A stretch of 63,590 nucleotides of DNA, filler included, from Octopus bimaculoides (taxonomy: Eukaryota), in the NCBI RefSeq assembly GCF_001194135.2. It is 6 parts of 5 records of this genome, joined end to end, with 100 filler letters (N's around TTAATTAATTAA, not from the genome) between each part and the next. Parts side by side here need not be neighbours in the genome. Positions count along the whole stretch, not along the records: positions 16,526 to 38,596 come from NC_068988.1; 5 more parts are not named here. The stretch is one strand, 5' to 3'. The notes below the pieces were generated by a model. The model was not told the origin of the DNA. It did not search any database and worked only from the letters and a program-made list of their open reading frames with translations. Positions 18,719 through 37,902 of this stretch are shown one piece after another. Position 1 is the stretch's first letter; every line of letters starts with the position of its first letter. Made by a program: the position numbers and the translations under genes.

Positions 18719-19246
18719 NNNNNNNNNNNNNNNNNNNNNNNNNNNNNNNNNNNTATATATATATATATATATAATACAGAATGGGACAAGAATGCAAAAC
18801 ATCAAGATAGTTAGGTGATACAAGAAGGGGACAAAACATTCAGATAGACGATACAAAGAAAACATGGACAGGTCATTTGGAGTTTTCTCTCTTTAGTCGA
18901 GATCCAGATTATCTTTGCAATTTCGGCTTGTTATTCTCGATATTGCTCCAATCTGGCCAGCCCCAAGAAAAAAACTAAGCTAAGAGCATCCTTGGAAGAA
19001 AAAAATCTGCAGCCAGTATTCATCGATTAATTCCAGTTGCTTTGTTTTGTTATTAAAGCGATCATGAGTATGTGCTCTATTACTTTTCTGAGTTCATACG
19101 CATGTATGAATATAATTTTTATTTCATTATCACTTTAGAACGACTATCTTATTTTATGAGTATATTATAAATGATTGCGATATTGTTTGTATTGATTAAC
19201 TCTTATACCTGTTCGTTTTTGCAGTAACTTGGTAGATCAAACAAAT

Positions 19247-20248
19247 ATGTCAAAAACTCACGAGAAATTCAGTGAAGTAAGAGAAGAGAAGGTTTACCGC
19301 TGCAGATGGGAAAAATTATTTGAATTATGGGAGAAGTTCTTCTATATCAATGACGAGAAGCTACCATTCAGAACATCAAATCCTAAGAAGAAGTGCCAGT
19401 ATATTTTATATCGAATGATCTACCTCCTTACTCTAACAGACTGTATGGCGTTTTTATATCATTCATTCGAAGTTTTCTTCTTGGAATCTTTTGATAAGAC
19501 TTTGACTATCCTTATGCTGATACAATGGAAATTTTGCTACTTTTTTAATTTCTTCATAATGGTGTCGAAAATCAAACAATATAAAGCATTGAAAGAAAAT
19601 TTCATGAATAGCACACTTTTGTGTATGTGTGATAATTGCGATGATAAGATCTCCTTTTTGTTGAAAATAGCGAAAATCAGAACCGTTCTTCAAATTCTCT
19701 TCGTGCTAACGATGCATCCGATTTTAGCGTGTATTTTGCCCCTATTGCGCAATCAATCCAGCATTTTTAATGTATTTTTTTATCCTTTTCCTTTAAATGA
19801 TAATATATTTTCTCTGCTGTTTTTATTTAGTTGGTGGAAATTTGTACTAGTTGCTTTGCAAATTTTACCCCAAGCCAACTTTTCCTGGTTTTTAATCGAA
19901 TATCTTGTTTTAGAATTCGGAGTTTTGAGGGAAAAGTGCCAGGCTTTTTTCGTGTCAGGATGTGAAATGCAACCGAATGCTGAGTGGAATTACCGAAACA
20001 AAATGCTTGTGCATTATTGTACGAGGCACGAAGAAATGTGCAACTTACTGGAGGATGTCAACAAAATTATAAAGTATAGTATATCAGCAATAATGTTAAA
20101 TATGATACTAGGTCTATGTACTATATTTGATGGCCTTATAAACAATTTTCTCAGGCAAGATGAACTAGTATTCATATGTATCTTACCAACATTAGTTTTT
20201 CTACTGTCCCTCAAGACACTTCATACAGGCATGAATCTTCACAAAAAT
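19247..20248 (+). CDS. Gustatory-receptor-like (Grl/7TMIC) gene, long N-terminal coding exon 1a (334 codons, TM1-TM6)
   Basis: Stop-free ORF MSKTHEKF...GMNLHKN with six hydrophobic segments and the GR/OR-type H-x-x-M-x-x-L-L-E-D-V-N helix before TM5. AG acceptors at 19223-24 and 19234-35 precede the ATG. Phase-0 donor AAT|GTAAGT at 20249. Aligns end to end with exon 1b with only 3 residues of indel. Confidence 0.85.
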
Positions 20249-20769
20249 GTAAGTATTGTATCATTTTTAAAATTCAGGAGATAATGTCCTAAAATAAAGG
20301 CTTCCTAGTTTATTGCCAGAAATTCGAGTAAATTCGATTGGCAATCCTATGATGTAAAGTAAACCAGTAGACTCATTGCTAATCCACAAAGCTTTTACAG
20401 AAAAATAATCAGTATTAATTCCTCATTTACTCCTGGAGCCTTTGGGCCCACAAGGCCACTTACCAGGTTTTCATGGTGTATAAATGACCGAGATCGCAAC
20501 ATTCCCCTGAACGAAACGCTGGATTTTAAGGAATTAGAAGTGTCCAGTTACATAGATTACAGTACTTTACTGGTATAATATTCTGAAGGAATTAAAGTCA
20601 AACTTGGCATTAGTGGGAATTGAACCGAGGGCGTAAAGATTCAGAGGAAATACCGCTATGCTATTTAAGCGATGTGCTAAGGATTTTGCCATTTCACCAC
20701 CCACATGCTTCCTTTATGTAATTCTAATTCTATATATTTATCGCTTAACTGATGGTAACTGGCTGCTCC

Positions 20770-21060
20770 TTTACAATACTATCTTTAATCGAAGGTTCCA
20801 GTTCATCCGATCAATGGAAAAGCCTGCTTGGGAAATTAATGCAGTATTCTATAAACACGCGTACTCTTAACGTAATTCTCAGAGACTCGGCGTGACACAG
20901 TATGTGACAAGGCTGACATTTTGAAATAATTATAACTTACCGACAGGAGCAATGTGAAATAAAGTGTTTTGCTTAAGGACACAATACGTCTCTGGGGTTC
21001 GAACTGACGACGTTACGATCGTGAGCCGAGTACCCTAGCCACTGAGCCACACACCTTCAC
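20770..21060 (-). mobile_element. tRNA-derived SINE (same family as 37211-37578)
   Basis: Reverse-complement similarity to 37211-37560, including the tRNA head. Confidence 0.7.
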
Positions 21061-36495: not shown

Positions 36496-37210
36496 NNNNN
36501 NNNNNNNNNNNNNNNNNNNNNNNNNNNNNNNNNNNNNNNNNNNNNNNNNNNNNNNNNNNNNNNNNNNNNNNNNNNNNNNNNNNNNNNNNNNNNNNNNNNN
36601 NNNNNNNNNNNNNNNNNNNNNNNNNNNNNNNNNNNNNNNNNNNNNNNNNNNNNNNNNNNNNNNNNNNNNNNNNNNNNNNNNNNNNNNNNNNNNNNNNNNN
36701 NNNNNNNNNNNNNNNNNNNNNNNNNNNNNNNNNNNNNNNNNNNNNNNNNNNNNNNNNNNNNNNNNNNNNNNNNNNNNNNNNNNNNNNNNNNNNNNNNNNN
36801 NNNNNNNNNNNNNNNNNNNNNNNNNNNNNNNNNNNNNNNNNNNNNNNNNNNNNNNNNNNNNNNNNNNNNNNNNNNNNNNNNNNNNNNNNNNNNNNNNNNN
36901 NNNNNNNNNNNNNNNNNNNNNNNNNNNNNNNNNNNNNNNNNNNNNNNNNNNNNNNNNNNNNNNNNNNNNNNNNNNNNNNNNNNNNNNNNNNNNNNNNNNN
37001 NNNNNNNNNNNNNNNNNNNNNNNNNNNNNNNNNNNNNNNNNNNNNNNNNNNNNNNNNNNNNNNNNNNNNNNNNNNNNNNNNNNNNNNNNNNNNNNNNNNN
37101 NNNNNNNNNNNNNNNNNNNNNNNNNNNNNNNNNNNNNNNNNNNNNNNNNNNNNNNNNNNNNNNNNNNNNNNNNNNNNNNNNNNNNNNNNNNNNNNNNNNN
37201 NNNNNNNNNN

Positions 37211-37578
37211 AGTGGAGGTGCAATGGCCCAGTGGTTAGGGCAGCGGACTCGCGGTCATAGGATCGCGGTTTCGATTCCCAGACCGGGCGTTGTGAGTGTT
37301 TATTGAGCTCCACGAGGCTCCGGCAGGGGATGGTGGCGAACCCTGCTGTACTCTTCCACCACAACTTTCTCTTACTTCATGTTTCTTTTGTGCTTGTAAT
37401 CCAAAGGGCCAGCCTTGTCGCACTGTGTCACGCTGAATATCCCCGAGAACTACGTTAAGAGTACACGTGTCTGTGGAGTGCTCAACCACTTGCACGTTAA
37501 TTTCACAAGCAGGCTGTTCCGTTGATCGGATCAACTGGAACCCTCGACGTCGTAAGCGACGGAGTGCCAACAACAACA
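37211..37578 (+). mobile_element. tRNA-derived SINE in Grl intron 2
   Basis: Box A TGGCCCAGTGG, box B GGTTTCGATTCC, (CAA)n tail. An inverted relative lies at ~20770-21060. Confidence 0.8.
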
Positions 37579-37812
37579 ATACAAATGTGAAATTTAAAGC
37601 TAATAGACTTATTCCTAGTAAATAATGTATTCCTTTCTGTATTCTTGAAAAACAATCATGCGATGTTTCATGAGGCAAATTTCGATCACAAAGAACGTTC
37701 CCAGGAAATACAAAGAACGTTCCCAGGAAATACTTATTATGACCCGGAACAAAATATCATCGGACGATATTAAAAGTATTTTTGCTAAATTCTTTCCTAC
37801 CTTTATTTACAG

Positions 37813-37902
37813 TTGACATTATTTCTCGATAGATTAAACACAACCCCAAGTGGTATAAGCGTTGGGGGCTTCTTTGTTATAAAGCCATCTTCTGTCCTAA
37901 CG
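37813..37902 (+). CDS. Grl exon 3 (30 codons, LTLFLDRLNTTPSGISVGGFFVIKPSSVLT), anchor domain/TM7a
   Basis: Strong acceptor tctttcctacctttatttacag| and donor ACG|gtaaat, phase 0-0. The peptide matches the GR/Grl pattern L-x-x-F-L-x-R-L...G-I-S-x-G-G-F-F-V-I...L-T. Confidence 0.85.

Follow-up and report, generated by a model that had tools for sequence, protein, structure and literature searches.

On the evidence of its sequence, a single gustatory receptor-like (GRL) gene of Octopus bimaculoides probably makes two receptors, by splicing one or the other of two long first exons, 1a and 1b, to one shared exon 2. The gene lies in the piece 16526–38596 of the window (the whole stretch of 63,590 nt that was analysed, to which coordinates refer unless another locus is named), which is AT-rich animal DNA, rich in microsatellites and transposon fragments. 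Its parts follow one another on the + strand in the order 1a, 1b, exon 2 and exon 3, with one copy each of exons 2 and 3 in all the window sequence read. Each long exon would supply its own start codon, an N-terminal helix and transmembrane helices TM1–6, and a single set of three 3' exons would supply the end of TM6, TM7a and the pore helix TM7b. Spliced in phase 0 to the start of exon 2 (34060), 1a would give one mature mRNA and 1b the other, and these would encode two receptors with differing ligand-facing bodies and the same pore and C-terminus; we infer that both junctions are used and that the ligand pockets of the 1a and 1b receptors differ. Alternative splicing had been proposed for this locus in a preliminary description, and is supported here by the single tail, the constraint on both long exons, the existing annotation, the recurrence of the layout at a second O. 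sinensis locus and in the cuttlefish Sepia pharaonis, and the predicted fold.

Two sequences served for comparison: the orthologous locus of O. sinensis (L001, 47.8 kb of chromosome CM016866.1, free of N) and, from a third octopod, the Logan contig L002 (run SRR11869385), which carries an ortholog of 1b. Two long open reading frames (ORFs) are prominent on the + strand of the piece, at 19229–20284 and 31224–32291; each runs a few codons past its donor into the intron, giving read-through lengths of 351 and 355 aa. The coding part of exon 1a occupies 19247–20248 (ATG at 19247, 334 codons, intact ORF) and encodes the predicted helices S0–S6. Its paralog 1b, separated from it by 11 kb in O. bimaculoides, has its coding part at 31260–32270 (ATG at 31260, 337 codons) and is likewise intact. 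The two proteins share 46% identity over 349 aa (BLASTP, E 4e-111). The best conserved stretch of these otherwise divergent exons is a cysteine-rich NSTLLC[MV]CDNCD in the S2–S3 loop (within 19600–19650 and 31620–31670), near-invariant across 1a, 1b and species.

Both long exons end at a homologous codon (...LH[K/Q]N|) in phase 0. The donor of 1a (AAT/GTAAGT, 20249–20254, + strand) has the same hexamer in O. sinensis, and the donor of 1b (AAT/GCAAGT, 32271–32276, + strand) is a non-canonical GC site. GC is also present in O. sinensis (L001 24278–24283) and GTAAGT in the third octopod (L002 1113–1118); the GT-to-GC change at this otherwise consensus donor is, as judged from these three sequences, common to O. 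bimaculoides and O. sinensis. Acceptor-like sites precede both start codons on the + strand. Those before exon 1a (19212–19235) comprise a pyrimidine run with CAG, reaching to 19224, and a TAG reaching to 19235, so that tttttgCAG stands 22 nt and ggTAG 11 nt before the ATG; both are kept in O. sinensis. The site before exon 1b (atatatttttgCAG, 31236–31248, with tttttgCAG) lies 11 nt 5' of the ATG and is identical in O. sinensis and the third octopod. The preliminary description had thus correctly placed two intact long exons, estimated by eye to be 40–45% identical, which is near the BLASTP value, and had correctly read their donors as phase 0 at the same codon and in frame with exon 2. Its acceptor 11 nt before each ATG corresponds to an acceptor-like site at 1b, whereas 1a has two such sites, at 22 and 11 nt, and it had overlooked that the 1b donor is GC, not GT.

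The shared tail begins with exon 2 (34060–34128, + strand, 23 codons, IHDIVEDLYAMNFKGLSTETRMK; acceptor tag, donor gtatct, phase 0 at both ends), which encodes the end of S6 and the start of S7a, and in which 23/23 aa are the same in O. sinensis. Exon 3 (37813–37902, + strand, 30 codons, LTLFLDRLNTTPSGISVGGFFVIKPSSVLT; acceptor cag, donor gtaaat, phase 0) encodes S7a and the loop preceding the pore helix, with 28/30 aa the same in O. sinensis. Exon 4 (IFGSLFTYVIVVLQTKRPADSSSS), which carries the TM7 motif, lies beyond the piece and is known from the UniProt entry A0A0L8FL56 and from O. sinensis; the piece itself holds no TY...Q exon, which in O. sinensis is found 7.4 kb past exon 3. Three introns, all phase 0, fall within the last 75 codons. 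In O. sinensis each part again occurs once and in the same order: 1a at L001 10001–11002, an intact 1b at 23267–24277, exon 2 at 27093–27161, exon 3 at 30166–30255 and exon 4 at about 37713–37784.

Existing gene models use both long exons. The O. bimaculoides 'Gustatory receptor' A0A0L8FL56 matches the C-terminal half of 1b at 100% identity, after which come IHDIVEDLYAMNFKGLSTETRMK, LTLFLDRLNTTPSGISVGGFFVIKPSSVLT and IFGSLFTYVIVVLQTKRPADSSSS, that is, with window exon 2, window exon 3 and a fourth exon. Residues 1–334 of the O. sinensis protein XP_036361416 (LOC118764606, 408 aa) are the ortholog of 1a (84% aa identity), not of 1b, and its tail is almost identical to that of A0A0L8FL56, so that this model corresponds to 1a+2+3+4. 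Two pipelines, applied to two species, have therefore provided one and the same tail with different long exons.

Pfam profile 7tm_7 was matched by O. sinensis 1a with its tail at 31.7 bits and by the conceptual O. bimaculoides 1a with its tail at 31.2 bits (cut-off 26.6), the match spanning profile positions 29–366 of 370. The half of 1b joined to the tail in A0A0L8FL56 scored 35.0 bits; the full conceptual 1b with its tail scored 19.2 bits (E 8e-4), under the cut-off. The long exons alone had no match in Pfam, and the family signal therefore needs the tail. An exhaustive HMMER search gave 60 relatives, mostly through the C-terminal 150 residues, and those whose source was looked up were O. 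sinensis and cuttlefish proteins. A profile made from the relatives matched Orco (3e-20) and Gr64a (2e-17) in the PDB, and also MhOR5 and Gr43a. The last exon reads FTYVIVVLQT, in which T, Y and Q of the TYhhhhhQF motif are kept and the final F is replaced by T; Y and Q are at least 90% conserved in 57 relatives, with the consensus TYxxVVxQF.

Structure was modelled with AlphaFold2 for the O. sinensis 1a isoform (P0003; pLDDT 88, pTM 0.88). The best 23 Foldseek matches in the PDB were all insect odorant receptors (ORs), Orco or gustatory receptors (GRs), with probability 1.0 and TM-scores of about 0.5–0.73. In the model, helices S0–S6 take up residues 1–343, with the exon 1/2 junction (334/335) inside S6; S7a (352–367) spans exons 2 and 3, and the pore helix S7b (382–401) spans exons 3 and 4. 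In solved GR and OR channels, TM7b lines the pore. The predicted partition of helices thus fits a variable body and a common pore helix, and agrees with the earlier proposal of a variable TM1–6 and a common TM7 in that S7a and S7b fall in the shared exons. Introns at the 3' end are a hallmark of GRLs (Benton et al. 2020), and the three phase 0 introns near the 3' end agree with it. Taken together, profile matches and modelled fold indicate that the gene is a member of the GRL/7TM ion-channel superfamily.

Several points weigh against two productive isoforms. Homology searches returned no transcript-derived protein with either junction, the matches being limited to the two gene models and a Logan contig of genomic origin. 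The NCBI model of 1a runs exactly from ATG to stop, without untranslated regions, and may therefore be ab initio or homology based rather than RNA based; both isoforms are never listed in one annotation, each annotation using one long exon. The piece does not reach exon 4, and 5' of 1a it covers 2.7 kb. Nucleotide identity between the species is 0.90–0.91 in the long exons and 0.88–0.90 in the introns; as the former barely exceeds the latter, the constraint is moderate, and the evidence for it comes from dN/dS, indels and stop codons. The 1b donor is of the GC type, and such donors are functional in about 1% of introns, but are weaker. Furthermore, an acceptor-like motif precedes both long exons, unlike in Drosophila Gr39a, where the large exons have no acceptor upstream and the first acceptor is found at the small exons (PMC2204066). 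Were these motifs used, 1b could be included after 1a with a premature stop: the 1a donor spliced to the 1b site would read AAT|ATT CAA CAA AAA TGA, meeting a stop after four codons, and the product would be non-productive.

As to how one long exon is chosen, separate promoters are the simplest and most likely reading of the locus, as in the fly loci. If each long exon had a promoter or leader of its own, 1b would leave as part of an intron in transcripts started at 1a, and its skipping would be helped by its 1 kb length and its weak GC donor. Another explanation, which we regard as rather unlikely, is mutually exclusive splicing from one shared upstream leader and promoter, with nonsense-mediated decay removing the 1a+1b products and perhaps with intronic pairing. 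The pyrimidine-rich, tttttgCAG-type motif is kept 11–22 nt before each ATG in both paralogs and in all species examined, which makes a spliced leader possible, and the stop four codons into a 1a–1b joint would suit such an arrangement. However, we identified no leader exon, no comparable acceptor motif precedes the first exons of a neighbouring O. sinensis cluster (see below), internal exons of 1 kb are unusual, and Gr39a-type loci use exon-specific 5' ends (PMC2204066).

A conserved inverted repeat also bears on this alternative. Its 5' arm (20455–20525, + strand), about 210 nt past the 1a donor, is complementary to a 3' arm (33765–33835, + strand) 225–295 nt upstream of the exon 2 acceptor. 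The arms stand on either side of exon 1b, and O. sinensis has kept them (L001 11210–11280 x 26797–26867), with duplex energies of -58.8 kcal/mol in O. bimaculoides and -66.0 for the O. sinensis counterparts, and local pairing scores of 68 and 81, higher than in any of 100 shuffles (maximum 61). RNAduplex applied to whole intron segments gave no discrimination (real -140 vs shuffles -139). The repeat may pair in the pre-mRNA, bring the 1a donor near exon 2 and loop out 1b. Against such a role, it resembles transposon copies: a more sensitive search gave several inverted matches to the arms, which point to a repeat family, and the inverted repeat is therefore probably made of old transposon copies. 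A second inverted pair (20574–20698 x 33015–33351), likewise enclosing 1b, is also conserved in O. sinensis and probably has the same transposon origin.

An improbable explanation is that one long exon only is functional and the other, 1a or 1b, is an unspliced duplication relic, the locus yielding a single receptor. It would fit the lack of transcript-derived proteins with either junction in homology searches, the single exon used by each annotation, the change of the 1b donor from GT to GC in the bimaculoides/sinensis lineage, and the fairly high dN/dS on the terminal branches (0.44–0.57); the neighbouring cluster, moreover, holds a dead first exon (E6, with a stop) and two fragments. Nevertheless, neither exon has been disrupted in either species, nor 1b in the third, even though the split between 1a and 1b is far older (dS above 1.2) than that between the species (about 0.17), and both are still full-length ORFs in every genome seen. 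Between O. bimaculoides and O. sinensis, dN/dS is 0.44 for 1a (dS 0.175, Fisher p 6e-4) and 0.57 for 1b (dS 0.163, Fisher p 0.017), significantly below 1 for both. The 1b protein is 81% identical to the O. sinensis copy and 74% to that of the third species, comparison with the latter giving a dN/dS of 0.37–0.40 (dS 0.37–0.41, Fisher p about 1e-7). For the shared exons 2 and 3, dN/dS between O. bimaculoides and O. sinensis is 0.19 (dS 0.087).

Indels and stop codons tell in the same direction. Neither 1-kb long exon has an indel (for 1a, over 1002 nt) or a stop codon, as against 6–12 gap events per kb in the flanking introns, from which about 6–12 indels would be expected of neutral sequence of this length; had the observed substitutions fallen at random, a stop codon would have been avoided with a chance of only 0.01–0.02. 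Splice signals are conserved for both exons, namely the donor hexamers with about 25 nt of the following intron and the acceptor-like motifs before both ATGs. A long exon kept intact for so long without a tail of its own must, we reason, use the shared tail. Purifying selection on both exons, as put forward previously, is therefore borne out by dN/dS, stops and indels alike, and the relaxed selection on 1a that would have spoken for a relic was not seen.

That the locus comprises two complete genes, with the short 3' exons of 1a hidden in assembly gaps, is highly improbable. The preliminary description had pointed to two gaps (26326–26399 and 28445–28863) as possible hiding places; three N gaps in fact lie between 1a and 1b (24948–57, 26326–99 and 28445–863), and exons of 23–30 codons at about 45% identity are hard to detect by tBLASTn. 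The two loci align, however, in collinear blocks of 82–88% nucleotide identity, and all five window gaps are intronic, none in an exon, with flanks collinear with the gap-free L001. The three gaps between 1a and 1b are in microsatellite or mariner insertions specific to O. bimaculoides, and the matching L001 intervals measure 31 bp and about 540 bp. No copy of a tail exon was found between 1a and 1b in either species by tBLASTn (E = 10), and scans for TY.....Q, GGFF-like and exon-2-like patterns gave only chance matches there in both. The best weak match to the tail, at 22203–22307, was rejected, as it has no splice sites and has an in-frame TAA in O. sinensis. The one-tail layout also holds at two more gap-free loci. 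Private exons in the gaps are thus rejected on the strength of the gap-free ortholog, which keeps the order of parts and has no second tail, in agreement with the earlier failure to find convincing copies of exons 2 and 3 in this interval. Finally, translation of one or both long exons alone by reading through the donor, to give a six-helix protein without TM7, is the least probable of all: each ORF does run a few codons into the intron (to 351 and 355 aa), but the read-through tails vary in length and sequence between species while the donor hexamers are kept, a long exon alone has no match to the family profile, and it is TM7b that lines the pore in the solved channels.

The interval between 1a and 1b also contains, as noted previously, a mariner transposase fragment (27680–28034, + strand; Pfam Transposase_1, 3e-14), which adjoins the gap at 28445–28863 and is absent from the orthologous O. 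sinensis interval, being specific to O. bimaculoides. Further mariner/Mos1 fragments (Pfam HTH_48, Transposase_1) are found upstream of 1a (17658–17945) and in the intron between exons 2 and 3 (34496–34768). The O. sinensis interval has retroelements of its own, at L001 12964–14654 and 16269–18640, comprising an ORF with an RVT_1 reverse transcriptase match and a long ORF with a weak GIY-YIG match after it (Penelope-like); a window ORF at 30467–30742 (minus strand) resembles the start of the Penelope-like L001 ORF.

The same layout was found at other cephalopod loci. The closest paralogs, LOC118764607 and LOC118764608, labelled 'uncharacterized protein' with several isoforms in RefSeq, occupy a 91-kb segment of the O. 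sinensis chromosome (L003, CM016866.1:83161909-83253231, reversed, no N), on the same strand as L001; the segment ends about 64 kb upstream of the L001 start, and from its tail to 1a the distance is about 74 kb. Seven long first exons (at about 9527, 12449, 31358, 39879, 51139, 56570 and 70013) precede a single tail (exon 2 at 75222–75305, exon 3 at 79175–79279 and exon 4 at 81255–81323). All but E6, which has an in-frame stop, are intact (6/7), and E2–E5 are near-identical recent copies. Their donors are of the GTAAGT or GTGAGT type, they share about 25–30% identity with 1a and 1b, and no clear acceptor motif precedes their ATGs; two NCBI gene models share the last base. Between the intact first exons, L003 also has two fragments of such exons on its minus strand (38153–37796 and 49665–49294), left over from the turnover of exons in this cluster.

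An alternative acceptor (tttCAG|GAC, 75234 vs 75276) 42 nt inside exon 2 accounts for the 14 residues (VHSITRSIHYMQFQ) that distinguish isoforms X3 and X4 of LOC118764607. Such isoform variants normally need RNA alignments in the NCBI pipeline; if the X3 and X4 models are RNA-backed, a first exon of this cluster may be spliced across 65 kb and six sister exons. Isoforms X3 and X2 of LOC118764608 (P0005 and P0063) have tails (…QGVDQEVVAK… and …QTKPL) identical to that of L003 in exon 3 yet distinct from it in exons 2 and 4, and first exons that are absent from L003, which implies that further first exons, and perhaps another partial tail set, lie upstream of it.

In Sepia pharaonis, the segment CAHIKZ030002108.1:266224-346661 (L004, no N; CAE1281263.1 and an overlapping neighbour model) has two long first exons 27 kb apart, one ending at 10510 and the other at 36578–37510, and a single tail (52323–52397, 64760–64873 and 70331–70435); the two gene models have a common 3' end. 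The Sepia tail is akin to that of the octopus gene (EDLY...GISV.G.F.I...TY.VVV.QTKP). When the first exons were placed in a neighbour-joining tree, three groups each had 100% bootstrap: 1a and 1b, the two Sepia exons (A and B), and the exons of the seven-exon cluster. As the tree groups exons by locus, the exon duplications were independent at each locus, or the exons have been homogenised within loci. Alternative splicing of this kind has been described for insect and other arthropod GRs; we found none in the papers searched for GRLs of cephalopods or other lophotrochozoans, a search that did not cover Robertson (2015). The automatic NCBI isoforms of the L003 cluster already display the pattern implicitly, under the label 'uncharacterized'.

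GR-like channels are ancient, and outside arthropods and nematodes their organisation and use are, to our knowledge, almost unstudied; work on octopus chemosensation has been centred on chemotactile receptors derived from nicotinic receptors. If both junctions are used, cephalopods have reached the fly solution, in which the ligand-facing body is swapped and the pore kept, and have done so with at least three independent origins. Three such origins would suggest that a gene built ancestrally of a long exon and then three short phase-0 exons makes the family prone to evolve in this way. Annotations would then undercount receptors, with one isoform listed per species for this gene, and the loci would provide defined natural pairs of chimeras for structure-function work on ligand specificity. 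More speculatively, cephalopods might build most of their GR-like repertoire from variable/constant loci, not whole-gene duplicates, with exon choice, by promoter or by intronic RNA pairing, setting receptor identity in each sensory cell. Equally tentative, and tied to that suggestion, is the idea that arrays of first exons (two here, at least seven next door and two in the cuttlefish) arose repeatedly and independently on one pore module. Such a repertoire would be convergent with insect Gr39a and Gr28b, and analogous to the vertebrate clustered protocadherins.

Among cephalopod loci, the octopus gene and the L003 cluster are both GRLs with one tail, the latter being larger, with at least seven first exons, one of them dead and four of them near-identical copies; the Sepia locus resembles the octopus gene in having two first exons and one tail, the members of each pair being each other's closest relatives. 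The vertebrate clustered protocadherins and UGT1A likewise combine long variable first exons, each with one constant 3' set, although the proteins are unrelated; there, each variable exon has its own promoter and the choice is made by promoter selection. The nearest counterparts are Drosophila Gr23a, Gr28b and Gr39a, of the same superfamily, in which tandem long 5' exons with their own ATGs encode TM1–6, TM7 and the C-terminus come from three short 3' exons used in common, the donors are all compatible, each long exon is under purifying selection, and gain and loss proceed by tandem duplication. In Gr39a, each large exon encodes six transmembrane segments and has a donor, three small exons encode TM7, and purifying selection acts on each large exon (PMC2204066). 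Gr23a has exactly two long exons, as at the octopus locus. The octopus gene differs from the fly loci in its phylum, Mollusca, in the independent duplication of its exons, in its far larger introns (11 kb between the long exons) and in the GC donor of 1b, and from Gr39a also in the acceptor-like motif before both long exons. What the octopus locus offers to chemosensory and cephalopod biologists is not a new principle, but a known one in a new phylum and of independent origin.

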